A stretch of 64,000 bases of DNA from Adineta vaga (lineage: Eukaryota > Animalia > Rotifera), in the NCBI GenBank assembly GCA_021613535.1, contig CP075494.1, forward strand, positions 10,168,001 to 10,232,000, read 5' to 3'. The notes under the pieces are model-generated. The model searched no databases. It worked only from the letters and a program-made list of their open reading frames with translations, and was not told the DNA's origin. Below are positions 9,001-37,300 of this stretch, one piece after another (the first letter of the stretch is position 1; every line of letters starts with the position of its first letter). The position numbers were made by a program, and so were the translations under genes.

Positions 9001-10600
9001 CATTTAGGTGTAGTATAACCCAACTTTAGAGATGGAGAATAGTACAGGTGCATAAGACTGATAGATGCACGAAAGACAAACATTTAGGTGTAGTATAACC
9101 CAACTTTAGAGATGGAGAATAGTACAGGTGCATAAGACTGATAGATGCACGAAAGACAAACATTTAGGTATAGTATAACCCAACTTTAGAGATGGAGAAT
9201 AGTACAGGTGCATAAGACTGATAGATGCACGAAAGACAAACATTTAGGTGTAGTATAACCCAACTTTAGAGATGGAGAATAGTACAGGTGAATCTGAATG
9301 ATAGACTCGCGAAAGACAAACATTTAGGTATGGTATAACTCAACTTTAGAGAAGGAGAATGGCACAGGTATATTTGACTGATAGATTCGCCAAAGACAAA
9401 CATTTAGGTATAGTATAACCCAACTTTAGAGATGGAGAATAGTACAGATGCATAAGACTGATAGATTCACGAAAGACAAACATTTAGGTGTAGTATAACC
9501 CAACTTTAGAGATGGAGAATAGTACAGGTGAATCTGAATGATAGACTCGCGAAAGACAAACATTTAGGTATAGTATAACTCAACTTTAGAGAAGGAGAAT
9601 GGCACAGGTATATTTGACTGATAGATTCGCCATAGACAAACATTTAGGTATAGTATAACCCAACTTTAGAGATGGAGAATAGTACAGATGCATAAGACTG
9701 ATAGATTCACGAAAGACAAACATTTAGGTATAGCATAACCCAACTTTAGAAGGAGAATCGTAAAGGTGCATAACACTGATAGATTCACGAAAGACAAACA
9801 TTTAGGTATAGTATAACCCAACTTTGGAAAAGGAGAATCGTAAAGGTGCATAACACTGATAGATTCACGAAAGACAAACATTTAGGTATAGTATAACCCA
9901 ACTTTGGAGAAGGAGAATAGTACAGGTGCATAAGACTGATAGATTCACGAAAGACAAACATTTAGGTATAGTATAACCCAACTTTGGAGAAGGAGAATAG
10001 TACAGGTGCATAAGACTGATAGATTCACGAAAGACAAACATTTAGGTATAGTATAACCCAACTTTGGAGAAGGAGAATAGTAAAGGTGCATAAGACTGAT
10101 AGATTCACGAAAGACAAACATTTAGGTATAGTATAACCCAACTTTGGAGAAGGAGAATAGTAAAGGTGCATAAGACTGATAGATTCACGAAAGACAAACA
10201 TTTAGGTATAGTATAACCCAACTTTGGAGAAGGAGAATAGTAAAGGTGCATAAGACTGATAGATTCACGAAAGACAAACATTTAGGTATAGTATAACCCA
10301 ACTTTGGAGAAGGAGAATCGTAAAGGTGCATTAGACTGATAGATTCACGAAAGACAAACATTTAGGTATAGTATAACCCAACTTTGAAGAAGGAGAATAA
10401 TACAGGTGAATCTGAATGATCGAGTCCCAAAAGACAAACATTTTGGTATGGTATAACCCAACTTTGGACATGGAGAATAGTACAGGTGAATCTGAATGAT
10501 CGAGTCGCGAAGGACAAACATTTAGGTATAGTATAACCCATTTTTAGAGAAGGAGAATATCACAGGAGAAATATATGGCAAATATTGTTGAAAGACAAAC
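1..10600. repeat. 80-bp tandem satellite array, about 130 monomers, open at the 5' edge of the window and decaying over ~10,380-10,700
   Basis: Exact 80-bp periodicity. Consensus is approximately AGTATAACCCAACTTTGGAGAAGGAGAATAGTACAGGTGAATCTGAATGATAGACTCGCGAAAGACAAACATTTAGGTAT, with a near-invariant AAAGACAAACATTTAGGT block. Indel-rich stretch at ~6,430-7,640. Confidence 0.98.
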
Positions 10601-13314: not shown

Positions 13315-16300
13315 ATGAAGAGGAAGTCTCAAAAAGTAGTGCGCTGGTATCTTTACCTTCATTCAGATAAATACTATTATGATCGAATTCAATATCCTCG
13401 GTGTGTTCACTTTGTAGGACCCAACTCTTTTTATATTAGAGTATATTTTCGATTCATTAAACCTGTCCAAACCGACTTTATTGACATAAAACAAAATCCA
13501 GACATTCTCCGCCCATCATTCAAAGTAGTCGATAGGTCTCGACAACTTGATGAACATTCAATATCAACAAATCATTATACTCTATTCGAAGAATATGCTC
13601 CACCTGAAGACCATCAAACTTCATGGCAAACATCTGGATCCTTCTCTCATTACACAAACGACCGTTTGAAAAATGATGTAAATGATTCGAAAGACCTTCA
13701 ACATAAATGGTCTGAAAAGTTAAAGATGGGTATATCTGAATATTATTATGATCGAATCCAGTATCCTCGGTATGTTGACTTTGAAGGACCCAACTCTTTT
13801 TATATTAGAGTATATTTTCGATTCATTAAACCTGTCCAAACCGACTTTATTGACATAAAACAAAATCCAGACATTCTCCGCCCATCATTCAAAGTAGTCG
13901 ATAGGTCTCGACAACTTGATGAACATTCAATATCAACAAATCATTATACTCTATTCGAAGAATATGCTCCACCTGAAGACCATCAAACTTCATGGCAAAC
14001 ATTTGAATCCTTCTCTCATCGCACAAACGACCGTTTGAAAAATGATGTAAATGATTTGAAAGACCTTCAACATAAATGGTCTGAAAAGCTAAAGATGGGT
14101 ATATCTGAATATTATTATGATCGAATCCAGTATCCTCGGTATGTTGACTTTGAAGGACCCAACTCTTTTTATATTAGAGTATATTTTCGATTCATTAAAC
14201 CTGTCCAAACCGACTTTATTGACATAAAACAAAATCCAGACATTCTCCGCCCATCATTCAAAGTAGTCGATAGGTCTCGACAACTTGATGAACATTCAAT
14301 ATCAACAAATCATTATACTCTATTCGAAGAATATGCTCCACCAGAAGACCATCAAACTTCATGTCAAACATCTGGATCCTTCTCTCATTACACAAACGAC
14401 CGTTTGAAAAATGATGTAAATGATTCGAAAGACCTTCAACATAAATGGACTGAAAAGCTAAAGATGAATGTATCGAATCCAGATCAAAGTGAATTACCAT
14501 CAAGCAAGCATGAAAAATCGTCACAAACGTCAACAGATTCGACATCCTTCAAATCCATTTCATCGTTAGAAAACATACAACCAAATGCAAAAACGCAATC
14601 ATCTGTACCAAATACAGCTTCATTTATCAGTCTTGGTGGTGATTCATTAACAATGACCAAAATCTATTACCAGATCCAGTTGGAACTAAACATAGAACCT
14701 GGAGCTTTGAGTATGCGCTTATTCCACGAACACAACACCATAGCGGATCAAGTGAAATTACTACAACAAGCGGAATCTAAACAAAATAGATTCATACGTT
14801 GGCAACCATTACATATTACCAAAGGTAAAGATTTTTCATATCTTGAGGATGGAAAGTATCCTTTTTAATCATTTTAATTCTTCAGGCGTAACATCTTTCG
14901 CTCAAGAACGCATAATTCTTGATGAAGAAATCCGTTTTACCAACATAATCGCGATTTATAATGAATTGATCGCTTTACGAATAGTTCGAGGTTCAATACC
15001 AGTAAAACGTCTCGCTAAAGCTCTCCGAAATATTTTGTCTAAACACAAAATATTAACAACATCTTTCGTGTTCAATCACCTTGATAATATTCTGAATCAG
15101 ATCGTTAACGGCCATCAGGGTAAATTCGAATTAGCTCAGCCAAAGATATTCAGAACTGAAATTGAACTTCATCACATTATTGCTCAAACAATCATGGATC
15201 CCAACTTATTCGATTTAGCACGTGGTCACGTTTTTCAGTGTCGAATGCTCAAACATCAATTCTCACCTCATGACAATATTGATAATGATATCATCTCTAA
15301 ATCTGATGTTCTCCTTATAGTTTTTCATCATACAGTATACGATGGATCTACTTCTTCAATCTTTTTGAGTGATCTGTCCAGAGCTTACAATAACAATACA
15401 GAATGGTCAGAAGATCAAGAATCATTACAATATATCGATTATAGTGTGCATGAACGCCTGATGGACATGACAATATCACGTGATTTTTGGCGTTCTTACT
15501 TAGATGGATATAATGCCAATGGTCGATTATCATTACCAGTTGATCGACATCATTTGTCAAGTGAACAACGCTCCGGATATGCTTCCGTCATTGAATTTTT
15601 TTTAGAAAAGGACACTTCAGTGTCATTTATAAACTATGCTACGACATATCAAATTACACCATTTCAACTGGGTCTAGCTATATTTTATGCATTTTTGTTG
15701 AAACTATCACATAATCATCATGATCTATGTATTTCTTGCATTAATGCTAATCGTTATAGGCCTGAATTACAAAACTTAGTCGGAATGTTTGTCGCTACAT
15801 CACCATGCCGTGTTAAAGTTGATTCTAACTGGTCATTCCACGAACTGGTCAGATGTGTGCGAGAACAATGTTTGTCAATTATGGAACATTCTCATTATCC
15901 ACTACAGCATATTCTTGCTGATCTTCATTCGGATCAATCAATGGTTCCTTTTCTTGATATAATGTTTCATTTTGTTAATATATCTTCAAACATGTCACAG
16001 TTCACTTTGGACGAAACCAGTTTAGAACAAGTACCATTAGCACCTTCATCTGAAGTGGCTAAGTTTGATTTTATGTTGAAATTTGTGTATGACTCAACAA
16101 GTGACGATAGCAAAATATCGTTTCGTTTGATTTGTTCACGAGATGTATTTGATGACAGTACAGTCGCAACGACAGCTCGAAGATTCAAACAAATTTTTGA
16201 ACAGCTTTTTCCATCAAATTTAACCAGCGAACAAACTAATCTATGTGATACGCTCGTGACCAAACTTAATCTCATCCTACCAGAAGAAGATTTAGAAGTT

Positions 16301-19300
16301 CAAAACATGACTTTCTGTCGACAACCAAATGCAATTAACGAAGGTATGTTTTCATATCTCTTAACAAGACAGTCCAATTATATGAAACTAAAACACTACG
16401 AAATAAATATAAGTGTATCAGACATTTCTAAGATACTCGCTCTATCCTGGTGGCTATTTTCCTTCCATGGTTATTGGTTGTTTGACACTATTTTTTTATT
16501 ACAGCACCTGCATCATACGCACAAAGGCAACTTTGGGATTATGAACAGAATCTGTCAAACGCAGAAAAGTCATCAACAGCAATCTACAACATGCCTTTTC
16601 TGTATCGAATAACATCTCAACACGTCTTATCTGCCGAACGACTTGAGAAAGCGCTACGTCTGTTGGTTATTAAACATCAGTCTCTTCGAACCGCACTCGT
16701 CTTTCATCAAGAAAATAATGCTCTTGTGCAAAATATTATTGATCTTGATGATAATCACATCCATCTATTTGAATTTATTGAAAGTACATTCGAAACAGAG
16801 AAACAACTCAGCGATGTTATAAAAGATGAAAGACAAAACGCCCGTCATTTCAATCTTACTCGTGGCTTCGTTTTTCGATGTCATATTCTCTATCATAAGC
16901 ATATTTCTTTGAATCACATTGTGGCTGACAAAGATGCGATTATTTTCAATTTTCATCACATGATCTTTGATTTTGCATCAATGGACATATTTCTTCATGA
17001 TCTCAATCAAGCGTACACAACTGGCCAACTATCTTCGGAGAATGATGATACTCTTCGTTACCTTGATTGTAACTATCTACACATATTGTCTTTTCATACC
17101 ACGTCATTTAACTCTTCTTTCTCTTATTAAGATGCTATTGTTGAACAACAGATACCAATGATGGGTGCACGTATGTTTTGGCTTGATGCTTTGCATAATT
17201 ATGATCTAGATCGACCTCTACCATTACCATACGATCGACATCCTCTCTCACACAAGCATAGAACAGATCGTGGAACATCTGTTTCATTTGATTTTGGTCG
17301 AGATGTTTTTGATTCATTCTTGACATATGCATCATCACATTGCATATCGCTTCAGCAACTATCACTTGCTGTTTACTATGCCTTTTTATTCAAATTCACT
17401 AACGGTGAACGAGACTTATGTATTGCGATGACCATTAACAATCGATATAAAGAAGAACTGAAATCAGTGATTGGATTGTTTGACAATATTATTCCATTAC
17501 GATGTGAACTTCATCCACATTGGTCTTTTGAACAATTCATCGAATATGTTTGTGCGACAGAGATTGATAGCATGAAATATTCATATTTCCCACTTCAGCG
17601 TACTCTTGATCCAAAGTCGAATGGGAAAATAGATGCGTTATACGATATTGCTTTCGACTTTCAATCAAGCGACAAGAGGCAGAGTGCAGTGTTTATAAAT
17701 GATACGCAACTTTATCCAATGCTCACCTCTATCAACAGAAACAGGTACGAGTTGATGAATGCGTTCAATTTGTCACTTGCAACTAAATTTGATATGAATC
17801 TGAAGCAGCTATCATACACATGTAATGCATCACTTGATTCATTCAATGCAGAAACAGCTTTTATGATTGCACAACGATTTCAAACTTTGTTGGAACAGAT
17901 CTTTTGTGCAGCGGATGACAACATGAAGAAAACAATCTATGACCAATCTTTATTGTTAGCAAATGAAAGACTACTAATACAATCAATGAACAAAACAAAT
18001 ATGTTACATTCATCTGTTTCCTGTATACACCATGACTTTGCGTATCGAGTGATAAGACATCCTCAAAAACTAGCAGTTGAACTTGATGAACAATTTCTCA
18101 CGTATTCAGAACTTTTGCATCATACTCAAACTTTATCATTGCATCTTCTTAAGAAATATCATGTCATTCCAGGTGACATACTTTGTCAATGTGTTGAAAG
18201 GAGTTTATCAATGGTAAGTTAATGGATATGTTTTTATGAGAATAATGTGATATTTATGTTCATTAGGTTATCGGTATAATGGCAATTGAGATGATCGGTG
18301 GCGTGTACTGTCCATTATCACCTCGGGATCCGGAGCAACGATTGTATGCACTAGTGGAACAAACAAAAAGTCGTCTAGTTCTTATTCATCATCTAACAAA
18401 AACAAAATTTCCAGATAAATCCGTACTAGTTGACATTGATATATTACTGAATTGTAATAGTATCGATCATGCCATTAATATTGATCGACTATCGATTAGT
18501 ATAATCTCACCAGAAAGCATTGCTTATATCATCTTCACAAGTGGATCAACAGGAATACCGAAACCGGTAAAAAAAAGATAATATTCCTGTTACAGAGTGC
18601 ACTCTTCTTTAATATCTGTAGGCTCAACTTCGTCATCGAAATTTTACTGGATCAATTTATTCTTTGCTGCGTGTTGACATTTTCAATAATATCCATAATG
18701 TTATACAAATGGCACGATGCTCATTTGATATTCATGTTCAAGAAATCATCGGTACATTAATCATCGGAGCAACGCTAGTGATGCTACATCCAAGAGGCAA
18801 TATTGATTTTGAATATCTTTCTATGATCTTAGAATCTAAACAAATTACATTTTTGTATACCGTACCAACTTTGCTCAATTTACTTTTCCAGTTCATTAAA
18901 GAAAATGAGAGACTTTATTCGGTTAAATATCTTAAATCCCTTTGCACCGGAGGTTAGTTTACGAAATACTTTTTCATTAGCGTTCTTCAATCATTGTTTT
19001 TCTAATATTCAGGCGAACGTTGCTCCATACAGTTAGTAAAATTATTAGAGAGTATTGTGAATAGCAACTGTTCAATTTGGAATTTATGTGGTCCCGCGGA
19101 AACCACTTTGCAATCGTTATTTCATCGAGTGAATTCTAAATTAGATACAGAATCTGTACCACTCGGGAAACCACTTCCTCATTACCACTGTATGATTCTT
19201 GATGATTTCGGTCAATCAGTTATTGTTGGTCAAGAAGGAGAAGTGTTAATGGCTGGGGTAGGTATCTTTGCTGGTTATTTTCAACATGATGACTTAACAG

Positions 19301-22300
19301 CGAAGGTTCTTATCGATATTGATGGCGATGTCTATTATCGAACAGGCGATCTTGTTCGAATGGATAACAATGGACTTCTTCATTATGTTGGTCGAAAAGA
19401 TTTTCAAATCAAACTACGTGGTCAACGTATTGAATTAGGAGAAATCGAACGATGTTTACTCAATACATCCATATCTGCTTGTATTGTCGTAAAGTGGAAT
19501 GATAATCATCTCGTTGCTTATGTGCAAAGCTCTGGTACTAAGGAAGAACAACTACGTGAACATTGTCAATCTTATCTTCCACCACATATGATTCCATCGA
19601 TATTTATGATACTTGACAAACTCCCTCTCAATGCAAATGGGAAAATAGATCGAAAAGCTTTACCTATTCCGAACCTCACTATTGATTCATCTGATATACT
19701 TATTAATCAATATAGCGAACCAAAGGATGCACTTGAAATATACGTTCACTCATTATGGTGTAAGGTTCTTGGTCATACTAAAATTTCAACTAGTGCAAGT
19801 TTTTTTGATATCGGTGGTCATTCTCTATTACTTGTGCAACTGTACCAAAATTATAAGATGACTTCAGGTAATAATATCAATAAAATCAGTATTGCAGATC
19901 TTCTGCAGTATCCTACTGTTCGTGGCCATGCTCGTCTGATGGATCAGCAAATGAATAAATCACAAGCTTATGCAGATATTCCTTCAAAATTATCTACTAT
20001 GCTAGGTATATTTCATTGTTGTATCAAGTTTATATATACTTTCAAACAATCTTCTTTTTTTACACTAGCAAAAACAAATTCAACTCAGGAACAAATCCAC
20101 TTTATCCCACATAAAAGCATTAGTCTAATAGTTGATGAGTCGGCACGTTATCAACCATTTCCTGTTACAGACATTCAACAAGCATATCTTGTTGGACGCG
20201 AAGGTTTTATTGTTCTTGGTCATGTTGCTTCATTTTTTTATCAAGAATTCGATTTTCCGTCAACATTTGATACTGAAAGATTAGAAAAGGCACTAAATTA
20301 TTTGATCAATTATCACGATGCACTACGTATCGTTTTTCCGTCTCCTTCAGAACAAAGGATTCTCGAAAAAGTTCCTTATTACACTTTACAAAAACTGAAA
20401 TTAGATGATATTTTGACAGTAGAAAAACAATTAATAGAACGACGACAGCAACTCTCACATCAAATCCGACCAGCTGATCAATGGCCATTGTTTGATATTC
20501 AAATGACTCGTTTTAATGTTAAACATGACTATCAAATTCGTATACATATTGGTTTTGACGCGCTTATCATGGACTTCTGGAGCATGATCTTAATATTGCA
20601 ACAACTAAGTCATTTATATAATAATTTGAGCATTACCTTACCACCACAAGCATTTTCTTTCAGAGATTATGTTTTGGCCGAAGAACAGATCAAGCAATCA
20701 GACATTTATAAAATCGATAAACAATACTGGATGAATCGTTTGAAGACATTTCCTTTGGGTCCTAAATTACCTTTAGTACGTTTGCCACACGAAATACGTA
20801 TACAGCGACATTGCAATTCACAGAAAATATTGGATCATTCATTCTGGGATAAGCTGAGAAAAAAAATACTTGATAATAATCTTACACCGGCTGGTTTTCT
20901 AGCATCCATTTATGTTATCGTGCTGTCCAAGTGGAGCGAAAATAAACACTTCGCTTTAAATCTACCAATATTTAATCGGTTATTGATTCATCCGCAAATC
21001 AATGATATAGCGGGCGATTTTACAGCAGTTCTACCACTAGAAATCAATTTTAACGAACCAATCACATTCTATCAATTCATGAAAACTGTGCAGAAACAGC
21101 TATGGAATGATCTGGAGCATATATCTTACAGTGGCGTATCCTTTATTCGTGATCTGATGCAAGCACATCAGACAAGAGAAATAGTTTTACCTTTTGTTTT
21201 TACTTGTGGAATAGATATTGGTGGTGTAGGTCATAATAACACTCGAGAAAATATGTTCAATAATCGGTTGCCAATATATTCAGTTAGTCAAACACCACAA
21301 GTTTTCCTTGATAATGTAGTATATGAAAACAATGGGCGTCTAATCGTCAACTGGATATATGTAGAAGGTTTATTTTCGGCGGATCTCATCAACGATATGC
21401 ATAAGACATTCATGGACTTGATTTATGAGTTGAGTTCGTCTGATGATATGTGGCAACAACGTGTTTCCATACCGTTACCATCTAATCAGCAAAAAAGAAG
21501 ATTATATCTTAATGAAACACAGTGGGAATCGAATGTCGAACAGCAATTAATTCATTCTCTTTTCACTCAACAGGCTAAACAGACGCCAGATAAATTAGCT
21601 ATTATTTCATCACAAACAAATCTCACATACAAACAACTCATGAATCGTGTATATTCATTAGCATCTCATCTTGAGTCTGAATATAAGATACAACCTAATC
21701 AGCTTATTGCTATTCTAATGGAAAAAGGATGGGAACAAATTGTTGCTTGCCTGGCAATATTAGTTTCGGGTGGTGCTTATTTACCATTGGATATTGATTT
21801 ACCATATGATCGCCTTAGTTTATTGATCGAAGAAACCAATGCTCATATCATTCTTACACAATCTCATTGTCAACATATATTTTCACATTTAACAACTATT
21901 GCAGTGGATACATTTACATATAATAATCAACCAACAACATCATTTCCTATCAAACAACAATCACCAACTGATCTAGCTTATGTAATTTATACATCTGGTT
22001 CAACTGGAAAACCGAAAGGTGTTATGATTAGTCACCAAGCTGTGTTAAATACAATTCTTGACATGAATTCAAGATTGGAAGTATCGCCTAACGACAACAT
22101 ATTTGCATTATCACATTTGAATTTTGATTTGTCTGTTTATGATATATTTGGAATATTGATTGCTGGGGGAACTATTGTAATTCCGAATCATGAAGAATAC
22201 AAAAATCCTAAGCACTGGTATGATATAATGATTAAGTATGGTGTTACCATTTGGAATAGTGTTCCAATGCTAATGCAAATGTTGGTTGAACATGTCAAAC

Positions 22301-25300
22301 ATAACAGCAGTAAACAGCATCACCTACGACATGTCTTGTTAAGTGGTGATTGGATACCTTTAACGCTACCAAAAGCTATACAAACAACATTTGGTGAACA
22401 GGTAACAATCACTAGTTTAGGTGGTGCCACAGAGGCATCTATTTGGTCAATTGCTTATAATATACCAAACCTGGTACTTCAAGAATGGAAATCAATTCCT
22501 TATGGAGTACCATTACGAAATCAACGCTATTATGTTTATGATACTCATCTTGATGATTGTCCTGAATGGGTTATGGGTGAATTATACATCGGCGGTAGAG
22601 GTTTAGCTGATGGTTACTGGAATGATCAAGTAAAAACTCAATCAAGTTTTATTATTCACCCACGAACAGATGAACGTCTCTATCGAACAGGTGACTATGG
22701 TCGATTTATACCAGATGGTTATATTGAATTTATGGGTCGAAAAGATTTCCAAGTGAAAGTACATGGTCATCGAATTGAACTTGGAGAAATTGAATACCAT
22801 CTACAACAGCATTCAGATATTCATCAAGCGGTCGTTAATGTCGTGAAAAAGTCTCAACAGTTGGTTGCTTATGTTAAGCCAGAAAGACATTCGGTCCCTT
22901 CTGAAGAATACGATCCATCACAAATTGAAATCACAGATCGTATTGAACGTACTGATTTTAAAGTAGCAAGACATAGTATACAACATCATTATATAGAAGA
23001 AAAGAGCTATTCCTTAACAAAACCAAAATTAACCGACACATTAATCAACAAATATTACGCTAGAAAAAGTTATCGACAATTCACGAATGAAAGTATTGAC
23101 AGGTCGACTATTGAACATCTGTTAAAACAATGTTATAACATAGATGATAATACTTATCAGCCATCTCCATCACATTTCGATTTCGATACTCTGAGTGAAT
23201 TGCTCGCTGCATTAACACCAATCAATATTTCTGATCAACCTCTACCGAAGTATCGTTATGCATCAGTTGAAGAGCTCTATCCGGTTCAAGTATATGTCGA
23301 AGTACATAACCAGATAAATAACATCTCTTCTGGTCTTTATTACCATAATCCAGATAAACATACTCTAGAACTTGTTACTACACATCTCAATGATGAAAGA
23401 ACGAATATATGTTTACACTTCGTTGGCCGATCATCGGCAATTGCACCTCTGTATGGAAAAAAATTAGGCTACGAATTTTGTGTCTTAGAAACAGGATATA
23501 TGATCGGCTTATTGGAGAAAGAAGGATTTCGAATGGGATTAACATTTTCGAGAGACAATCATATTGAATATTTAAGAAGAGATGCTCTCGATGTGCAAGA
23601 AGACGACACCCATTACTGCTATACTATTTCCCTAAATGAGCAACACATGACGAATGATAAACATCATAACTATTATCGATGCCTTGTGTATATAAAATCC
23701 GGTATAAATAGAAAAGACGAATGGTTTAGTTATAATGCAGACACTGATTGCGCTATCTCTCACAGTAGCGGAGCTGAGACTAAAGAAGAAGCAATGCCGT
23801 TGTTTTTTGATGATGATAACGATGCAAAAGCTATCTTTCATGATTGCCAATGTGCAGTTTTCTTGATTGGAAATTCGAACTCTAGTTTACAGGCAGGCAA
23901 AATATCACATTTACTTATGGACAATTGCTTAGAGAAAAATATTGGTATATGCCCAATTGGAACTCGTACTAGTTTTCCAACAAAAATTAATAATACATTA
24001 GATAATATTATCGATAGTGCCAATCCAGATAAAGATAGCAGTTTACTGCATATTCTACTAATGGGAAAGATTAGTGATGAACAAAAATATGATCGAACGA
24101 CTTCGAAAGTAAAAACAATGCCTAAATGGAATGAAACATTAAAAATATATTTAAGTGCGAATCTTCCTACATATATGGTGCCATCACACTTTATGACTGT
24201 GTCGAAATTTCCGTTAAATTCAAATGGAAAGATAGACCGAAACGCTTTACCGGAAATATCTATGGAAATTATTCAGCAAGAAGCTATATATCGTGCACCA
24301 GCGACCGACTTAGAAAAGACGATTGTAAACATCTGGCAACAAGTATTATACATCAATGGATCAAATTCTCACCCACTGTTATCAGTTGACAATGATAATT
24401 CATCTTCAAGCTATTATTCGGATGCGAACTTATCTGAAACAAGAACACAACGGTTTCCGCCTATATCAACAACATCAAGTTTCTTCAATCTTGGCGGTGA
24501 TTCTCTTCTACTCGTTCAGATTTATCGACATTATCAATCAGTTTTTAGTTTTGACATCGAAACGACGAGTATTCGACCATTTTTTGAACGTGATACTGTA
24601 ATAGACCATGCAAAACTACTTGAAACCATAGCAGCCAATAACACTACACTCAAACAGTGGCACACATTACATATTGAAGAGGGTAAAATGTTTTTGAGTT
24701 TACTATGTCAATAACTTACAGTATGTGCTCAATAAATTTTTAGGCATCGCATCGTTTGCTCAAGAACGTATATTTCTAGATGAGCAAGTTCGTTTTTCTA
24801 GTCAAATCGCCATCTACAATGAGTTGGCAGCTTTACGACTTACTAATAGTTCATTGTCAGTAGATCGTCTGACAAAAGCTCTGCGATCTATTTTGAGCAA
24901 ACATAAAATATTACGAACCTCTCTCGTCTTCAATCATGATAACAATACTCTGATTCAACATATCAATGACTGCTATCTAACATTCAAACTAACACCAGAA
25001 AAAATATTTAGAAGCGAAAACGAACTTCATGACATTATCTTTGAAATAACGATTGATCCTGATCTCTTTAACCTACCAACTGGTCGTGTTTTTTATTGTC
25101 AAATACTTCGTCAACACATGCAATCTGGAAAAAGTAACAATAAAAAATTTATTGCACAGGGTGATGTAGTTATAATCGGTTGTCACCATGCTGCTGCTGA
25201 TCGATCAACCTTTTCGATTATTTTGAATGACCTATGCAAAGCTTACAATAGTAATGCAATATGGTTAGAAGATCAAGAATCATTGCAATATATTGATTAT

Positions 25301-28300
25301 AGTGTCCATGAGCGGTTAATAGATATGACATCGTCACGTGAATTTTGGCGCTCGCAGTTAGATAGATACGATACTGAGTGTCACTTATCGTTACCAATCG
25401 ATCGCCAACGCCTACCTACTGAACAGCGATCTGGATATGCTTCAGTCGTCCGAATCTCTTTTGACGAAAACCTTGAATACAACTTCATTAGATATGCTTC
25501 TTCACATCAAACCACTCTATTTCAACTAGGACTTGCTACGTTTTTTGCATTTCTATTCAAGTTAACCTTTCAAGAAACTGATTTAAATGTTGCGTGTGTC
25601 AATGCTAATAGATACAGGCGGGAATTAGAGAATATAGCTGGAATGTTTGTTTCGACATTGCCATATCTTATTCATCTTGAAAATGATTATTGTTTCAACG
25701 ATCTTGTCATGTATGTTCGAGACATATGTTTATCAGTTTTTGAGCATTCTCATTATCCGTTACAATACATTATCAAAGATCTCCATCTCAATTCGTCAAA
25801 CACCTCGTTTCTCGAAACTTTGTTTGACTTCATTGTTGTTACATTTAATGTTGATAAACTGTCTTTTGATGGAACAAATTTGCAGAGAATTCAAACAACC
25901 AAGTCGATAGAAGTGGGTAAATTCGATTTCAAGCTCACATTTGTGTATGATCCCGAGTTAAGCGACGCCAAACTATCGTTTAATCTGGCGTGCTCATATG
26001 ATCTGTTTGACGACACAACAGTTTCGAAAATGGCTCAACGATTTCAGTATTTGTTTCAACAATTATTTACAAGTAGTTCAGATAGTAGTCAAAACAAGTT
26101 CAATGTTCCTTCGATTGCAAAACTTATTCTTATACTACCAGAAGAAGCTGATGAAGCACAAAGAATGATATTTCGACGTGTATCACGTATCACTGACGAA
26201 GGTATGATTTCTCACTTTAAGTCTGTATGGCACTTATATAAACTTCGATTAAGAGAAGACTTCAAACAATACAGTAGAGTGCTTGGTTTGCATGAGTATT
26301 ATCTTATTTGATATTCACTCAGAAAAAATAAAGGAGATCGGCAGCAACTGACGACGACAGTCAGCATTTCTTTTGGAAACTCAAATGTAAAAAAATTGCA
26401 AAGGATTGCATAATGATGACAAGTATCGATCAATATTTGTATATAATAGAAGCTGAGCATTCAAGCATTTCATTTCTAGCAGCCATGCACTAAATCAGAT
26501 TTGGACAGATATATTTCACCAGTAAAATGCATAACTACTTCTTTTAACTGTTTTTGATGAGTGTCGATGTATGTATGCATCACTTGATTATCATGTTGCA
26601 AATCGACATATTTTGTCGACTCAACATTTCAACACAAAATTCGCATAAAAACACGAGTCTACGAAAATTGATCGACGATTATTGATCGACACGAAAATTG
26701 ATCGATACGAAAATTGATCGAAACGAAAGTTAATTGTAACAAAAATCGTTGTATAAGAGAATACGACGCAGAATAAGAGAAAAATAACATCCTGATATCT
26801 TTCTCATCCTGGAGATAGAGATAAATTAAAATAAAACGAAACTGGGATAAAGAGAGAATCCCTAAATAATACAATTTTCTGATAATAAAACATTCTCTGA
26901 TGCAATTAAATAATTATACATCATACAATCACTTGAAAGCAGCCTAAGATTCGTAGAGAATACCTTTAATTAAGAGCTAATTTCTCTTAATTATAAACTA
27001 ATCAGATCAATAGATCACCGACAAAGTATTAAAGTAACTGTTCGAGTGAAATCATGAGTTATTGTGTTCTAAATGTCGACTTTCACGCTAAGTAAAACTC
27101 AACAATTGAAACCTTTATTAATTTGTAAAGGTTTCTTGTGTTCTTGTAAATGTAGATGTTCTTCATAGAATAAATTCTCTCAAAACTAACTCAGTCGACT
27201 AATTTTCTTATACACTTATTTTCGTAACGATCAATTTTCGTTCGATCTTTTTTCGTTCGATCAATTTTCGCTTTCCCTAAAAACACATGATATTGAAAAA
27301 GATCAAATTGATTTTCACAGAAAATGTAATGTTTATAAAAGCAACATCTTGATTAAGTGGACATATATGAGGATGACTTAGACGTCAAAATATAATCAAC
27401 CACACTCTCGTCCAGCTAATATTGTACATATGTGCCTATCACAAATAAAGTAACAAAAGTAGAGCTCGGACGAGTACTTGTCATGTACTTGAACTAAATA
27501 GACTTTATTTCTATCTGAGTTTGCTTTTGAGGACAATCCACTAGGTCCATTCGATGCAGCGTTTTAAGCTCTACAAAATAGATCCAGTCACATTTTTCAC
27601 TTCTAATTTAACTAGATCCAAAAAATCGAAAAACCACGAAAAATACTTGTACTTGCCAAGTACAAGCATTTTCTTCATTATTTTCAAACTATAATTAATC
27701 GCAAATATAATGTGAAAATGTGGCCCCAGTGATGTTGTAAAGCTTAAAAAGCTGCATCTAATGGACCTAATGGATTATCCTCAATAGTAAACTCTGATAA
27801 AATAAAGTCTGTTTAGTTCAAGTGCATCACAAGTACCTCCCCGAGCTCTGAACAAAAGTGACTATTGAGTTGAGCTCTCCCTCTTTTCTCAAAAGCGTAA
27901 ATCAAGACATTCATTGACATAACTTAATCTCAGCCACTCCTCAATCGAGCGAAGCGAAAAACAGTTATCCTTCTTTTCTCCAATATTCAGTCATACTTCC
28001 GTCTAGTGCCAGCATCATATGCGCAAGCTCGCATTTGGCTCGATGAACGAATTCGATTCGATCCCGATAAACCACAACTCGCAATATACAACATGCCTTT
28101 TCTCTATCGCCTCTCTTCCGAATGTACCCTATCAATATCACAACTTCGCCATGCTCTTCAACTCATTGTGCAGAAACATCTATCACTACGAACATCACTC
28201 AACTTCGATTCAGAAAACAATGTACTCATGCAACGAATTGTTGATTTAGACAACGATAATAAAGATCAACTATATGAATTCATCGAAAGTACTTATGAAA

Positions 28301-31300
28301 CAGAAGAAGAACTCAGTCACATTATGCACACTGAGAAAGGCAATCCACATATCTTTGATCTTTCCCGAGGTCTTGTTTTTCGATGCCATCTCGTCTACTA
28401 CAAACGAATATCTACAAATGATTTTCTCTCCAACAAAGACGCAATCATTTTCAATTTCCACCATGCTTTGTTTGACTTTCCATCAATGAAAATATTCCTT
28501 CATGATCTCAATCAAGCATACACAACTGGTCAACTACCTCCTGATAATGATGATACTCTTCGTTATCTTGATTGTAACTATCTACATATATTGTCTTTCA
28601 ATACCACTTCATTTGACTCTTCATTCTCTTTTTAAGATGCTATTATTGAACAACAAATGCCAATGGCAGGCGCAAGCATGTTTTGGCTTGATGCGCTACA
28701 TGATTGTCAACTCGATCGACTACTACCGTTACCATATGATCGACATCGTCTTTCAAACGAACATCGAACTGGTCGTGGAACATCCGTCACTTTTGAGTTC
28801 GGTCAAGATCTTTCACATCATTTTCTTACCTTTGCAACATCACTCAATATTTCTCTTGAGGATCTAGTGCTTGCAACTTATTATACTTTTCTATTCAGAT
28901 TAACGACTGGAGAAAAGGATTTTTGCATAGGAATGAACACACATGGTCGCTATAAAAATGAGTTTAAATCAGTGATAGGTATGTTTGTCAACGCTATTCC
29001 ATTGCGATATCAGCTGAATCCTCATTCGTCATTTCATCAGATGGTTACAGGTGTCTGTGAGATGAAGTCTAAAACTGTGAAATACTCGTATTTTCCGCTG
29101 CAGCGCATTCTCTCTCAACACGCGAATGTTTCGAAACCTGTATTCCTTGATACTTCATTCGAATTTCGATCATATGCATCAAAACTCGAGAAGAGTGATA
29201 TAACGATTGGTAGCAGTCGACTTTTAACAAGGCCTCACTCACTCGATATTGGAAACGATCAGATAATGACGAAATTTGATTTCACATTTAGCGTATTGTA
29301 TGATAGACAACATGAAAGTTTTTCATGTGACATTTCTGCATCATTGGATTTGTTTAATACTCAAACAGTCTATCAGATTGCACAACGATTTCATATTTTG
29401 ATAGCTGCGTTGATCTCTTTTCTTCATGATCAAACGAAAAAACCAATCTACGAATTATCAGTAATGACACCCGATGAAATGTGGCTCACACGGTCGTTGA
29501 ATAACACACATGCGGCATATACTAATTTTATATGCATTCATCATGCGTTTGTTTATCAAACGATGAAGTACTCACAAAAACTTGCAGTTGAGCTTGATGA
29601 ACAATCGTTAACGTATGCTGAACTTCTTCATTATGTGCAAATTCTGTCTGCGTGTCTTCTCAACAAATATGATGTTGATGTAGGTGAAATTATTTGCCAA
29701 TGCGTAGAACGCAGTCTATCGATGGTAAGTTGGTTGGAAGGAAAAACTTTCAACATACCATTAATCCACTGTCGAATAGGTAGTTGGTATGATGGCAATT
29801 GAAATGATTGGTGCTGTATATTGTCCGTTATCACCTCGAGATCCGCAACAACGATTGCATACATTGTTACAGCAAACAAATAGTCATATAGTTCTTGCTC
29901 ATCATTTCACGAAGTCGAACTTTGATGAAAATACCGTCACAATCGATATTGATTTTATACTTATTGACAATGATATTCAAAAAGATATTGATGTTTGTCG
30001 ATTAACAGACGTGATCATGACATCAGATAACATCGCTTATGTAATTTTCACCAGTGGATCAACAGGAATACCCAAATCAGTAGATAACTCGTTGCATTGT
30101 TTATTGACTAGATTAACTATATCATTCTCTTCCTAGGTTCAAATCAAGCAACGCAGCTTCATTGAACTCATATGTTCGCTAGTTCGTAGTGATGTTTTAA
30201 TCAAGCATGACACTGTTGTGCAAATGTCACGTTGCTCTTTTGATGGTCACATACAGGATATACTGGGTTCACTGGCTGTTGGAGCTACTCTTATCATGTT
30301 ACATCCACATGGTATTATGGACTATGATTACCTTGCTAATGTTCTCCAACAAAAGAATGTTACTTGGATCCTAACAGTACCAAGTATCCTTTATAATTTC
30401 TTTACTTTCGTACAACAAACAAACTACCTCTCTAAGATTAAATGTTTGCGATCGGTTTGTACTGGCGGTATGTAGTCAAATATTGTAATACATAAATTCT
30501 TACTTTATTGATAATGTATATAGGTGAGGCGTGTTTTGACAAACTAGTAGTCCTAATTCGAAATAGTGTGACACAAAGTTGTCGATTATGGAATATGTAT
30601 GGCCCTGTAGAAACAACAGTTGAATGCGTTTCTCATAATCTGAGTGGTGCAACAAATACGGCGAGCATTCCTATTGGTAAACCAATACAAAACTACAAAT
30701 GCCTAGTCTTGGATGACTTTTTGCAAATGAATATAATTGCTCAAAAAGGTGAGTTGCTTGTCGGAGGAGCAGGCGTGTTTCCTGGTTATCTTGGGCGTGG
30801 TGATTTAACGGCACAAGTACTCATCAATATTGATGGTCAGACTTACTATCGAACAGGTGATCTTGTTCGAATGGATGACAATGGACTACTCCATTACATT
30901 GGAAGGAAAGACTTTCAAATCAAACTTCGTGGTCAACGTATCGAAATCGGTGAAATTGAACAATGTTTACTGGGAATTTCCATCGAAGCATGCATCGTCA
31001 TCAAATGGGGAGAAGATCATCTAGTTGCTTATGTTCAAAGTTCTCATACTACCGAAGAACAACTACGTGAACATTGTCAATCGCATCTACCACCACATAT
31101 GGTTCCATCCATGTTCATCATACTTGACAAACTTCCTCTCAATGCTAATGGAAAAGTCGATCGAAAACAACTTCCTTCGCCAGAATTTTCGAATTTAACC
31201 GCTTTATCACAAGACGAATCTCAAAATTCACTGAATCACTTGGAACAACGAGTATATGATATCTGGTGTCAAGTTCTTCATTTCAAAGGAAGTCATTTAT

Positions 31301-34300
31301 CTAAAACTATCAACTTCTTTAGTGCGGGTGGTCATTCACTACTTTTTATCGAATTGTACCACCGTTATCAAACTGTGTTCGAGTTTGATATTCATGCTCT
31401 GTCAATCGCTCCTTTTCTTGAACAACCGACTATAGTTCAACACGCAAGCTTACTGGAAAAAGTCACAATGAATGAGTTGAAGTCAGCACAATGGCATACA
31501 CTCCATCTGATAAAAGGTAAGCTATTTTCATCTCATACCATATTCTTTGAAAAACTAATGTGGTTTATACATAAATTTGTAGGTAACGCATCTTTTGCTC
31601 AAGAACGCATTTTTCTGGACGAGCGAGTTCGGTTTTCAAAGAAAGTCGCTATCTATAATGAACTGATTGTCTTAAGACTTGCTGATGGTACCTTGCCAGT
31701 GAATCGTCTAAGAGATGCTTTCCGATATCTGTTAAGTAAACATGCTGTATTGCGAACATCTATTGTTTTCGACAACGAAACCGGTTATGTTCATCAATAT
31801 ATCAATGACAATATTCAAAACTACGCATCAGTTAACAAACACACATTTGAGAGTGATCATCAACTCAACGACATCATACATCTGCTATTAATTGATCCTC
31901 ATCTCTTCGATTTATCCACTGGACGTGTCTTTAGCTGTCAACTATTTTATCGACAATCATCTAACAGCGAAGAAAGAAATACTGATTTCATCGAAGAATC
32001 TGATGTTCTCATATTTGCTTTTCATCATGCAGCCTTTGATCGGACATCTCGCTCGATATTTTTCAAGGATCTGTATCATGCTTATAATAATAATTCAATA
32101 TGGTTCGACGAAGAGAAATCATTGCAATACATTGATTACAGCGTTCATGAACGTCTAATTGATATGACACCATCACGCGAGTTTTGGCGTTCTCAACTAG
32201 CTGGCTACCATGTCGAGCATAGCTTAGCGTTACCTGTTGATCGACGTCGTTCGCTCAGTGAACAACGATCGGGTGCAAGCTGTGTCGTTCAAACATCCTT
32301 CGACAAAGAAATTTCTGCATCATTCTTGGAATATGCTTCATCACATCAAGTGACACCATTTCAACTAGGTCTTGCTACATTCTATGCATTTTTGTTCAAG
32401 TTAACACATGGTGACAATGATATATGTGTTTCTGCTCTGAATGCTAATAGATACAGACCGGAATTGCAGAACATTATGGGCATGTTTGTTGCAACATTAC
32501 CACATCGAATTCATCTTGACAAGCAGTTGACCTTTCACGAACTTGTTAGAGTTGTGCACGAAACATGTTTAGCGATTCTTGAGCATTCTTATTATCCTCT
32601 GCAACAAATTCTAACTGATCGGCGTCTGAATCAATCTCCTGTTTCATTTCTTGACATAATGTTTGAGTTTGCTACTGGATTTTCTGGCGAGGGTCGAAAC
32701 TTTTCGAACAGTCTGTACTTGGAAAATGTATCATTAGAACAAACATTACAAATGGCTAAATTTGATGTCATGCTTTGGTTTGGCTATAATCCATCATTGA
32801 AAGATGAAAAATTATCATTCAGTTTGATTTGTTCAAGTGATTTGTTTGAGGTGTCAACGGTCAGAATGATAGCTCGAAGATTTAATCATTTTCTTCATCA
32901 GATTTTTTTAACAAATCCAATTGTCGATCAAGCAGATGCTCATGCTCGTTCTCTCACTAAATATAATCTTATTCTACCAGAAGAAGATTTAGAAATTCAA
33001 AAACAAGTATTCTGTCGACAATTAACTGTTATAAATGAAGGTACGTTAATTTAAAATGTGTGAAATCTACTAGTATTAAAGAGAATTGAGTCGATAATAG
33101 TTTGGAAACCTGTATTAATTAGAAAAAATCTGATTATTTTTCATACATGAACTTTTGAAAGTTGATAAGGAAAGAAAGAAAAATCACTATTTCACATGTC
33201 TGAGATTTATGGGACCTTGAACAATAATCTGAATGCGCTCATCTATTATATAATTTACAATGTTTGTTATTTTATGTCACACATTCATATATATCATGTA
33301 TAATTCTCGAACAATTACTATGTTCTATTGTCAAGTAGGAGATTACAGATCCTCGGTAGTATAGTTGCGTTTTGTAACATTTTCGCATGTCGTCCAGTGT
33401 AATGGTGACTTGTTTCGTGTGAAAATTGAAGCATTCTTTTTGTTCGACTACATGTTTTACTTTGACAAAGATATTGGAATAGTGAAGGACATCAACATGT
33501 TGTAATGCAAATGAATTTTGTCTGATTGAACTATTAATGATTATGACTAAATACATTTTGATATCGCGATATAAACCAGTGACAGAAATATTTCAAAATA
33601 AATCACATCTACAGCCCAATAAAATACTGTAAGACGCAGCTTTGTTCCAAATACTTTAAAAGAAATAATGCTTTTTTAGAAATATTAAATAATTTTTACA
33701 TACGATGGAATCCACGGAAGATTGCACTGTAGTCTTCTATGAAATAGTTAAGATTTGCTATGAAAAATAGAGTCAGTCGTGTGTCATAATTAGTCAGTCT
33801 CACATATTCGATGGTCGATCTATTTTTACTATTGCTGTTCCGATATATTCCTGATGGTGATTCTACCGCACTCTGTAGTCTGAAGACATACCATAATAAT
33901 TCTCAAACAATTATTCTTTTTCTAACATAGCACCTGCTTCTTATGCACAAACTCGACTTTCGTATGATGAGAAAACACCTTTTCATCCAGATCAGTCTTC
34001 GACAATCAATTACAACATGCCATTTCTTTATCAGCTATTACCAAAACACACTTTATCTATCAAGCGACTTCGGCAAGCTCTAGAACTGTTGGTCATCAAA
34101 CACGAATCATTCCGAACTTCTCTCATTCTCCCCCAAGAAACCAATATACTCATACAAAAAATCATAGATCCTGCGTATAATAAGTCCGATCTGTTTAAGT
34201 TTCTCGAAAGTACATATGAAACGATCGAACAATTGAACGACATCATTACTAGTGAAAAGGAAAACTCGAAATGTTTTGATTTACCTCAAGGCCTCGTGTT

Positions 34301-37300
34301 TCGATGTCATCTCATTTACTACAAACATATCTCTGATAACGATATTCTTTCTGGTAGCGATCGAATTATTTTCAACTTCCACCATGCTGTATTCGATATT
34401 CCATCAATGAATATTTTTCTTCGTGATCTCAATGAAGTATACACGATAGGTCAACTACCGAACGATGACAATGATAGGTTGCGTTATATCGATTGTAAGC
34501 ATACATGGATTGTATCGACCCATTTAATGTTATTTTTCTTTGTTTATATTTAGATACTATAATCGAACAGCAAATGCCAATGACTGGTGCAAATATGTTT
34601 TGGCTGGATGCTCTGCAGGATTGTCATCTCGATCGATCTCAGCCACTGCCATATGATCGACACCGTCTTTCCAACGAGAATCGAACTGGCCACAGCATTT
34701 CGACATCTTTTGATTTCGGTCATGATCTCTCCTATGAATTTCTCGCTTATACATCGTCTCACAATATTTCACTCCGGCAACTGACACTTACTGTCTATTA
34801 TGCTTTTCTATACAAATTGACGAATGAAGAGACAGATATTTGTGTTGTGATGAACGTTAACAATCGATACAGAGATGAACTCAAATCAATCATTGGATTG
34901 TTTGAGAATATCATTCCATTGCGTTGTCAAGTTGATCCTCACTGGTCTTTTCACCAATTAATTCAACATGTTTGCGAAATAGAGGAAAGTTGCGTCAAGT
35001 ATTCGTATCTTCCCTTTCAACGCATTGTCAATCAACATGCAAATCCTACAGGAACTGCATTTCTAAATATCTTTTTTCATTTTCAATCAAGTGAAAGTCA
35101 ACATAATCAGACTAAAGTGATGATAGGAGACGCTAGACTCTATCGTTTATCTGACCCGGTCGAGAAAACTAATCATGATATGATAAATCAGTTTGATTTC
35201 TTAGTTTTCATCGAACACAACGCAAGTGATAATCGACTATCATGCACAATCAAGGCGTCACTCGATTTGTTCAGTGAAAATACGGTTTCTACGATTGCAC
35301 ATCGATTCCATTGCATGATACAAAGTATGGTTCACCCGACAAATGATCAAATGACAACACCAATCTACGAATTATCATTCAGATCACCGAATGACGAATT
35401 GTTAATGCAATCAGTGAATAACACAGAAATGAAGAATTCATCTGTTTCCTGTATTCATCATGAGTTTGTCCGTCAGGTGATCGCACATCCACAGAAACTA
35501 GCAGTTGAACTTGACGAACAGTCTCTCACGTATTCAGAATTGTTACATTCAGTTCAAGTTTTGTCTCTACGTCTTCTGAACGAATATCGCGTTGTTCCAA
35601 ACGAAATCATCTGCCAGTGTCTTGAGAGAAGTCTTGCGATGGTAAGTTGATGAAAGGTATTAACCATAGTCTTAGTGAAATATTGATATTGATTAGGTCA
35701 TTGGTATGATGGCAATTGAGATGATCGGTGGTGTATATTGTCCTCTATCACCTCGAGATCCGGAACAACGTTTGTATGCACTTGTACAACAGACGAATAG
35801 TCGTCTTGTACTGGTGCATAGTTCAACAATAAACAAGTTTCCCCTTTCTTTCATTATATTAGATATTGATATTCTAACGATTCGTGTAGATCTCGAAGAT
35901 GTTTCTAGTATTGTTCAACTATCAAATATTATAGTCACGCCAGATAATATTGCCTATATTATTTTTACCAGTGGATCAACTGGGATACCGAAAGCTGTGA
36001 GTGATGTCTTCAACGATGAAGTGACAAAGCAGTAATATCCATTTCTTTTATAGGCACAAATTCAACACCGAAACGTGAGCGCGTGTATGCATTCTATGGT
36101 GACAATTGATGCTGTCAATCAATACGATATGGTCATACAAATTGCACGTTGTTCATTTGATGTTCATGTTCTAGACATAATGGGAACATTGATGATTGGT
36201 GGATCTTTGATAATGCTACATCCTGACGGTATTCTAGACCTTGAATATTTCACATCAGTGCTGCAAGAAAAACAAATCACTTATATTCAAGCAGTTCCTA
36301 GTTTGCTTAAAGCATTCTTTACATTTCTGAAAGAAACATTTCAATACTCTCAAGCAACATGTTTCAGATCTGTCTGTAGTAGTGGTTAGTGGTTATAAAT
36401 CACATTTTTATCTCAATAATCTCTCTTTCTTTTCGTAGGAGAACCTTTCTCACTCGACTTAATGTCGTTAATAAACAGTTACGTCACAAGCAAATGTAAT
36501 ATATGGAATTTGTACGGTCCCGCCGAGACAATAATTTGTACATTTCAATGTGTCAATTCGTCAGAGGATATAATAAAAATTCCAATCGGCTTGCGTATGC
36601 CTGACTATCAATGTCTGATATTAGACAAATTCTTACAAAAACTTGCGCTAGATCAGGAGGGTGAATTATTTGTGGGAGGGTTAGGAGTCTTCGCTGGCTA
36701 TCTTGCACAAGATGATTTGACAACGAAAGTACTCACTAATATTGATGGTGCGAATTTCTATCGCACAGGTGATCTTGTTCGAATGGACAGCAATGGACTT
36801 CTCCATTACATTGGAAGAAAAGACTTTCAAATCAAACTTCGTGGTCAACGTATCGAAATCGGTGAAATTGAACAGTGTTTGTTGCAAACTTCCATCGACG
36901 CATGCATCGTCATCAAATGGGGAGAAGATCACCTAGTTGCTTACATTCAAAGTTCTGGCATCACTGAAGAACAGCTACGCGAACATTGTCAATCGCATCT
37001 CCCACCACATATGATTCCATCGATGTTCATCATACTTGACAAACTTCCTCTCAATCCAAATGGAAAAGTAGATAGAAAACAACTTCCTCTGCCCGAATTT
37101 TCTCATTTATCATCAGCACATTTGGGTGAAGATGGTAAACCAACAACACCAAGAAATGAAACTGAACGCATCATTCATCACATTTGGTGTGATATACTTA
37201 AGAGAAATGAGATCTCAATCGATACAAGCATCTTCAGTATTGGTGGCCATTCATTACTCATCATGCAACTCTTTCATCGATACAAGATAGAACTTCATCT

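Follow-up and report, generated by a model that had tools for sequence, protein, structure and literature searches.

A Cy-A(Cys)-Ox-T exon, predicted to form a thiazoline or thiazole, in a nonribosomal peptide synthetase gene of the bdelloid rotifer Adineta vaga

The window analysed here is a 64-kb stretch of the genome of the bdelloid rotifer Adineta vaga (G000:C5:10168001-10232000), located on the chromosome-scale contig C5 of an assembly of 100.8 Mb in 6 contigs; an earlier note on this DNA had guessed that the host was an animal, as it is. From ~13.3 kb to the window end, the + strand carries an array of nonribosomal peptide synthetase (NRPS) domains, organised in modules of condensation (C), adenylation (A) and carrier (T) domains. 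Within it, an open frame of 1,902 codons (19006-24711) holds one long exon encoding a heterocyclization (Cy) domain, an A domain with a cysteine-type code (A2), an oxidase (Ox) domain and a carrier domain (T2), together module 2 of the gene and the subject of this report. Coordinates are window positions unless a genome contig (C1, C3 or C5) is named. Homology searches were run exon by exon, with spliced protein joins confined to in-house scripts, and transcript evidence consists of contigs from runs X1-X3.

The exon had been read in the earlier note as a complete Cy-A(Cys)-Ox-T unit of EpoB style, and Pfam and NCBIfam domains, the A2 pocket code and a sequence and fold match to the oxidase BmdC all agree with that reading. 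Across 20071-24681, Pfam placed Condensation at amino acids (aa) 60-473, AMP-binding at aa 498-850, AMP-binding_C at aa 1353-1387 and PP-binding at aa 1465-1499. The first of these domains has DxxxxD in place of the condensation-type HHxxxDG, with the DxxxxDxxS motif present, and its closest characterised kin in a solved-structure search were the Cy domains of BmdB, PchE, FmoA3, HMWP2/Irp2 and EpoB; for Cy and A together, the best solved relative was BmdB (2e-199). In A2, motifs A3, A7, A8, A9 and A10 are all intact. Its pocket code, DLYNLSLIWK, was read off FDLSVYD, WNSVP, LLSGDW, SLGGATEASIW and the A10 Lys, and is what we take to be the classical Cys code of Cy modules (Stachelhaus et al. 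1999).

Between A8 (22735-22794) and A9 (24163-24183) of this domain lie 400 residues that match the solved BmdC oxidase in sequence (E 2.8e-6) and share with cyanobacterial Ox domains carrying PF00881, on alignment, the motifs RxSxRxF, KYxYxSxxxxYPVQ, GxYYxxP, PxYG, LExGY, GxCPIG and GKI. An AlphaFold2 (AF2) model of the region scored 78 for predicted local distance difference (pLDDT) and 0.84 for predicted template modelling (pTM), and its Foldseek neighbours were the tandem nitroreductase 3eo7, BmdC, the cyanobactin oxidase ThcOx and McbC. The domain runs ~150 residues beyond the usual length, and the additional part is folded in the model.

Compared with the ortholog in A. ricciae, the ratio of nonsynonymous to synonymous substitution (Ka/Ks) is 0.09-0.18 in every domain of the module, with synonymous sites saturated. 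The module is complete, intact, transcribed, spliced and selectively constrained. Its sequence identifies it as a module of the EpoB type, predicted to form a thiazoline or thiazole, in which Cys activation by A2 is predicted from code and clade, while binding of flavin mononucleotide (FMN) and oxidation of a thiazoline by Ox are predicted from sequence and model.

At the 3' border of the exon, the joint 24682^24744 is present in one X1 contig, and in the gene models of orthologs ...LHIxEG and IASFAQERI meet at this position. All X1-X3 contigs aligned to the window with zero mismatches and were colinear over the covered parts of the exon, with no further joint. At the 5' border, the A. ricciae ortholog (P0001, locus L025 1761-1818) has a 58-nt GTAAGT..AG intron that aligns base for base with the A. 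vaga intron. Since 58 nt cannot be divided evenly by 3, the A. ricciae intron must be spliced out. Ortholog proteins contain nothing that corresponds to the 21 codons of the A. vaga intron. As this intron is in frame and stop-free, the open frame by itself cannot prove its splicing. A placement of the A. ricciae intron shifted by 12 nt (on a 'TMLG' anchor) was rejected, the DNA alignment giving the same position in both species. With the 3' side shown by the X1 contig and the 5' side supported by comparison with the A. ricciae intron, the exon stands as first drawn (4,614 nt between phase-1 introns), and so does its junction to the flanking module at the 3' side. The further claim that it lacks internal introns is observed to hold where RNA contigs lie; elsewhere, its support is the open frame together with alignments to bacterial and rotifer homologues that show no gaps. 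Skipping of the exon (20005^24744) would, as had been suggested, leave a frame without stops (...KLSTML-G-IASFAQERIF, computed); the X1-X3 contigs, which do not reach into 19794-20124, contain no such joint. The features are collected in Table 1.

Table 1. Features of the module 2 exon and its immediate neighbours (window positions)
Feature	Position	Strand	Evidence
A1 introns 18214-18266 (phase 0), 18567-18621 (phase 0), 18953-19012 (phase 1)	18214..19012	+	Same three positions in A3-A7
Last exon of module 1: A1 C-terminal part (A5-A10) and T1 (GGHSL type)	19013..20005	+	Pfam AMP-binding, AMP-binding_C, PP-binding on 19057-20004; intron 18953-19012 before
5' flanking intron, 63 nt, GTATAT..CTAG, phase 1	20006..20068	+	Sequence; A. 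ricciae counterpart
Cy-A(Cys)-Ox-T exon (predicted), linker first	20069..24682	+	4,614 nt, stop-free; Pfam, NCBIfam; colinear RNA contigs where covered; Ka/Ks 0.13 vs A. ricciae
Cy domain	20191..21510	+	Pfam Condensation 1.9e-41; solved matches BmdB, PchE, FmoA3, HMWP2, EpoB Cy
A2 core (A1-A8), code DLYNLSLIWK	21511..22920	+	TIGR01733 2e-123; clade with bacterial Cys-A of Cy modules, 100 (starred)
Ox domain, double-size (~400 aa), between A8 and A9	22921..24120	+	BmdC sequence match, shared motifs, AF2 model, Foldseek
A2 C-terminal subdomain (A9 LPTYMVP, A10 NSNGKIDR)	24121..24390	+	Pfam AMP-binding_C aa 1353-1387; motif coordinates
T2 carrier and WHTLHIEE linker	24391..24682	+	GGDSL 24493-24507; identity to rotifer flank T domains
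3' flanking intron, 61 nt, GTAAAA..TTAG, phase 1	24683..24743	+	Removed in X1 contig; family-wide position
Next condensation-type domain C' (HHAAADR)	24744..26201	+	Pfam Condensation 5e-47; solved matches C, not E (epimerization), domains

The six other A domains of the window (A1 and A3-A7, here called flank A domains) are built differently, as the earlier note had observed. Each contains three GT-AG introns (18 in total) at identical alignment positions and in phases 0, 0 and 1, namely after VERSLSM, after STGIPKx, and inside the GGE of LCTGGE; the six spliced models are all in frame and stop-free, and all six carry SFDxH where A2 has FDLS. The flank modules are tandem duplicates with 65-98% nucleotide identity, and the shared intron positions point to duplication after intron gain, not to repeated independent gains. 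Their pocket codes (DIQYCGLLQK in A1, A5 and A6; DGQLCGMVEK in A3; DVLQCSLI-K in A4; DNLHCGHVNK in A7) match no specificity code known to us, so the product prediction goes no further than an X-thiazole unit early in the chain. In A5 and A6, the second intron measures 943 nt (39506-40448 and 47189-48131) vs 55-57 nt in A1, A3, A4 and A7, and the two long introns are mutual copies (38951-41504 vs 46631-49187, 93% identical).

A2 itself is only 25-32% identical to A1 and A3-A7, vs 52-56% to cyanobacterial Cys-activating A domains (Cys-A). In LG+G4 trees, it fell inside the bacterial Cys-A clade, with the flank A domains in a separate rotifer clade (100, starred); the nesting of A2 with its neighbours, which would have spoken against a different lineage, was not seen in the trees. 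A tree under the C20 mixture had its starred branches compatible with a single origin of the bacterial Cys-A group, counting the rotifer A2 clade as part of it. In trees of the Cy and A cores, the rotifer units formed one clade (100, starred) nested among bacterial units, in which the window module paired with A. ricciae P0001 (99, starred). Sister to the rotifer clade (100, starred) was a bacterial protein, P0098, encoded on a Logan contig (L026) in a compact polyketide synthase (PKS)/NRPS operon of the trans-acyltransferase (trans-AT) type with overlapping genes. Among the proteins compared, P0098 alone shares the double-size Ox outside rotifers, and it had no close kin in 185,579 species genomes, the best 80 loci reaching ≤46% identity and none of them having a long Ox. 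The L026 operon comprises ketosynthase-acyl carrier protein (KS-ACP), C-A-T-Cy-A-Ox-T, a second KS-ACP, a thioesterase and a phosphopantetheinyl transferase (PPTase). For the flank type, no non-rotifer sister emerged: a protein homologue search with the flank exon listed rotifers only, and an exhaustive search of representatives placed giant multi-module bacterial proteins in the top ranks (on summed scores) without a sister group. Cy-A is nested in bacterial diversity and other animals lack it, which is the pattern of a bacterium-to-bdelloid transfer, and sequence comparison places the origin of Cy-A-Ox as bacterial-type, single and older than the split of Adineta and Rotaria.

The arrangement is not confined to this gene, as a one-off insertion would be. 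Six further copies of the module are present in the genome (55-66% identity, none with an internal stop), and the domain map repeats the order C-A(three introns)-T / Cy-A-Ox-T / C' at three of the loci, C1:17.96 Mb, C1:16.83 Mb and C5:40 kb. The copy at C5:16.907 Mb is truncated and lacks Cy, while at C1:11-20 kb two tandem Cy-A-Ox units share one frame of 3,293 codons. Protein matches revealed related modules in A. ricciae, A. steineri and Rotaria, with the layout C-A-T / Cy-A-Ox-T / C in the Adineta orthologues; since paralogues and orthologues have the layout in common, the junction must be ancient. The tandem locus (G000:C1:11007-20789, - strand; loci L004/L005/L014) consists of a divergent loading A-T, the two Cy-A-Ox units and then T/C', which would predict a bis-thiazole; its loading T is also carried by Rotaria P0014. 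A further locus (G000:C3:6821195-6823927, - strand; L008) holds a stop-free frame of 7,164 codons whose C-A modules are 34% identical to the query, possibly a younger NRPS acquisition that is still intron-free.

If the exon were a foreign module inserted whole, its ends should coincide with the change of lineage, and they do not. The last ~75 residues (T2 and the WHTLHIEE linker) are 55-58% identical to those rotifer T domains that follow a flank-type A (the T domains before C'), vs ≤43% to bacterial T domains, while the A9-A10 piece just ahead of T2 is 44-51% identical to bacterial domains and 34-43% to the rotifer flank type. The sequence thus changes lineage between A10 and T2, inside the exon. 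The 3' intron is the family-wide T/C' intron, found after T2 in all paralogues. With T2 and the 3' intron both of resident type, the foreign piece would end within the exon, not at the intron. The 5' intron lies 60 residues past the T1 Ser, which is the position of the family T/C intron, and three paralogue loci (C1:17.96 Mb, C1:16.83 Mb, C1:11-20 kb) lack it; at both C1:17.96 Mb and C1:16.83 Mb, Cy starts 3 residues past the would-be exon end. These observations speak against the flanking introns as the seams of an insertion. The upstream partner of Cy-A-Ox also varies by copy, being a T1-type, a T2-type or a loading-module T.

Nor is the symmetry of the exon a special mark, as had been supposed: phase-1 introns occur at every module junction of the gene and are not peculiar to this exon. 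Viewed as a case of exon shuffling, the exon has the same intron phase on both sides and can be skipped in frame; its borders differ from the foreign-lineage borders, and its flanking introns do not accompany the cassette wherever it occurs. GC content gave no transfer signal (0.348 in the exon, 0.348 in its neighbours). By its sequence, the exon is a chimera, a foreign Cy-A-Ox core fused to a host-type T. Two readings of the front intron may be offered: the core may have taken the place of C-A in an ordinary module, with the front T/C intron kept and later lost in some copies, or the front intron may have been brought in by conversion from a neighbouring T.

These findings suggest, with a probability that we put at about 0.72, that module 2 is a working thiazoline/thiazole elongation module in a giant, intron-bearing A. 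vaga NRPS, and that it is a chimera derived from an old recombination in a horizontally acquired, much-duplicated family. A2 would load Cys onto T2; Cy would then join the residue held on T1 to this Cys and cyclodehydrate the product to a thiazoline, which the FMN-type Ox embedded in A2 would oxidise to a thiazole, before the chain is taken over by the next condensation-type domain, C'. The Cy-A-Ox core probably came from one bacterial-type ancestor common to the bdelloid copies and was probably in place before Adineta and Rotaria diverged. It would have been fused to the family's own type of T, between two copies of the generic phase-1 T/C intron, by an old recombination within the duplicated family rather than by recent insertion of a bacterial cassette. 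The mechanistic steps are ones that we infer from family knowledge, and the history is partly demonstrated and partly reconstructed.

Several points weigh against this interpretation. On the functional side, substrate, cyclisation and oxidation are all predictions from sequence; Pfam PF00881 stayed under its cut-off on Ox (19.9 vs 23.5 bits, with only aa 48-88 matched); and we know of no worked-out precedent for a condensation-type domain placed right behind a thiazole module and followed by a second C domain. As regards gene structure, the 5' intron is drawn from ortholog comparison, the RNA contigs leaving 19794-20124 uncovered; transcript depth is low (2-6); and the X1-X3 runs were taken as RNA by guess, although the GT..AG joint argues for RNA. 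As regards history, the argument from T2 spans ~75 residues, the T2 pattern could also have arisen by gene conversion at some time after the acquisition, and the placement of P0098 as sister links two long branches.

Among the alternatives, the one that survives best, though still an unlikely one in our judgement, is that a single bacterial NRPS with C-A-T beside Cy-A-Ox-T was acquired once, that introns were then gained in the ordinary C-A part, and that this module was amplified together with its introns while the T domains were homogenised by gene conversion. P0098 lends it substance, being a single protein with exactly the order C-A-T-Cy-A-Ox-T, encoded in a bacterial operon; duplication after gain would explain the identical intron positions of the flank A domains, and the similar stem/crown branch ratios of the two A clades (2.0 vs 2.3; 0.51/0.25 vs 1.66/0.73) and the equal GC content of the exon and its neighbours are in line with a joint arrival. 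However, the first module of P0098 is 28-33% identical to the rotifer flank type and thus not specially related to it, no rotifer was found among the 120 best matches of that module, and the flank C and C' domains reach 23-29% identity to any bacterial domain found, vs 37-40% for Cy. An LG+G4 tree that placed the first A domain of P0098 as sister of the flank clade (96, starred) was rejected as a long-branch artefact: the link was undone by the 28-33% identity, by the reciprocal search and by a C20-mixture tree with closer bacterial rows.

A somewhat bolder proposal, to which we give slightly less credence still, extends the recombination itself. A phase-1 intron precedes every condensation-type domain (T/C', C'/C and T/Cy), which makes whole modules in-frame cassettes; intron-assisted shuffling of such modules might then have given Cy-A-Ox new upstream partners, of three or more kinds, in one case with the joint precisely at the exon border, and the animal might make thiazole peptides that no bacterium encodes.

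The account given in the earlier note, in which a bacterial Cy-A-Ox-T entered on its own and became an exon within a resident, intron-rich NRPS with the phase-1 introns as seams, now appears doubtful. The lower identity of flank C and C' to bacterial domains is what it would predict, as are the distinct Cy-A lineage nested in bacteria and the 4.6 kb without introns, vs four introns in the flank C-A regions. The 5' intron exactly at the family T/C site, the Cy start 3 aa past the border in the C1:17.96 Mb paralogue (as insertion at a T/C intron would give) and the differing upstream partners among paralogues, which suggest a recombined cassette, also fit. But T2 and the 3' intron are of resident type, three or more paralogous genes lack the 5' intron, and the arrangement is old and family-wide. 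Long intron-free exons are also found in the flank type (e.g. 2.5 kb at 30524-33040), the two A clades have alike stem/crown ratios, the Cys-A and Cy domains form slow-evolving clades, and GC content is equal. The contrast with a 'resident eukaryotic' assembly line is itself the wrong one, because the bdelloid NRPS family as a whole was horizontally acquired and forms a clade of its own (Nowell et al. 2024, PMC11258130), and a flank exon has its best solved matches in bacteria (LgrA and the tyrocidine and surfactin synthetases). It is very improbable that the module is a relic, decaying or non-functional, or that it represents bacterial DNA contaminating the assembly: low transcript depth and the truncated copy at C5:16.907 Mb speak for such a reading, against which stand an open frame of 1,902 codons in which every core motif is intact, a Ka/Ks of ~0.13, splicing to a neighbouring exon, GC content like that of the host, short introns of the rotifer type and a location 10 Mb into a contig of 16.9 Mb.

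The condensation-type domain behind T2 is part of a repeated scheme in this gene. Copies of C' lie at 14886-16343, 24744-26201, 31588-33040, 41895-43370, 49575-51030 and 58391-59846, with motifs xASFAQERIFLDE and HHAAxDR; C' occupies the slot of bacterial E domains and is more like true C domains. Labelling it an E domain was rejected on its N-terminal SFAQERIF, its middle GMFVSTLP and its solved matches, which are true C domains. A second C domain (PASYAQARIW, HHxxFDF) follows each C', so that the repeat reads T/C'/C-A-T, with phase-1 introns at both junctions. At the T/C' junctions of the window, the phase-1 intron lies 59-60 residues past the carrier Ser; besides the one after T2, such introns are found at 14825-14885, 37438-37497, 41833-41892, 49507-49572 and 58327-58388, plus an in-frame one between T3 and C'3. 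The C'/C junctions also have phase-1 introns, the shortest of 161 nt (16344-16504) and the longest of 3.8 kb. Behind the C' of Table 1, a phase-1 intron of 1.8 kb probably follows and C3 starts at 28007, this C'/C junction being modelled from ortholog proteins. Probable C'/C introns at 26202-28006, 33041-33930, 51031-54812 and 59847-63626 measure 0.9-3.8 kb, compared with 162 nt in A. ricciae. The C5 domain (37500-38930) has a C'-type N-terminal half joined straight to A5, and internal duplications within the array are very recent (36653-38607 vs 41048-43002, 97.8%; 48658-55184 vs 57478-64000, 93%).

Whether the array is one giant gene or several turns on the long C'/C gaps, which we read as probable introns and NCBI as gaps between genes; the NCBI gene model P0122 (window 55972-59881) treats them as intergenic. 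In the product of a probable first exon (13315-14824), a 123-aa unit (369 nt) without a Pfam match occurs three times, the copies being 97% alike; the T domain (GGDSL) that comes next lacks an A domain ahead of it. Upstream, 4-10570 is occupied by an 80-bp satellite of ~132 copies that are 90-92% alike; it is strongly skewed in both GC and AT and ends ~2.7 kb ahead of the probable gene start.

Thiazole and thiazoline peptides, such as epothilone, bleomycin, yersiniabactin and bacillamide, are known as microbial products. An intact, expressed and constrained module of this type in several animal genes predicts that bdelloids make heterocyclic peptides of their own. Such products would offer a target for mass spectrometry, with Cys-derived losses of 18 and 20 Da, and for heterologous expression. 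The structure of the gene likewise points to eukaryotic rebuilding of a horizontally acquired assembly line, in the form of uniform phase-1 junction introns and a host-type T on a foreign catalytic core, and, among the proteins compared, the double-size oxidase is common only to rotifers and one uncultured bacterial cluster. The expansion of NRPS genes in bdelloids has been described (PMC11258130, PMC10531068); the main texts of these two papers make no mention of heterocyclization, thiazoline, thiazole or oxidase domains, and a search of the accessible literature library returned no text tying rotifers or Adineta to heterocyclization, thiazoline or thiazole.

The module does not represent a new kind of system, as bdelloid NRPSs and bacterial thiazole modules are both already established. 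The order Cy-A-Ox-T, in which Ox interrupts the A domain, was reportedly described by Schneider and Walsh for the EpoB and BlmIII oxidase domains. With myxobacterial modules of the EpoB and MtaD type, the rotifer module shares this domain order, the position of Ox between A8 and A9, the Cys code and the DxxxxD motif of Cy, and the Cy domain of EpoB (5t7z) is a significant solved match to its own. Unlike the EpoB type, the rotifer module belongs to an animal, is flanked by spliceosomal introns and has a T of another lineage, and its Ox measures ~400 aa vs ~250 aa, with what is modelled as a tandem (pseudo-dimeric) nitroreductase fold; this Ox is 27-34% identical to bacterial Ox domains. The bacillamide synthesis proteins BmdB and BmdC (7ly4, 7ly7, 5t3e) provide the best solved matches to Cy-A and, in sequence and fold, to the oxidase, but BmdC is a separate trans-acting protein, whereas the rotifer oxidase is embedded in the A domain. 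P0098, sister to the rotifer Cy-A units, has the long Ox and the same two-module order as modules 1 and 2 of the A. vaga gene; it differs in having no introns, a first module unrelated to the flank type, and identities of 37% (Cy), 51% (A) and 27% (Ox). Closest in organism is the bdelloid NRPS/PKS repertoire itself, with ~40 clusters in the A. vaga assembly, which is likewise horizontally acquired, multi-module, duplicated and intron-bearing.

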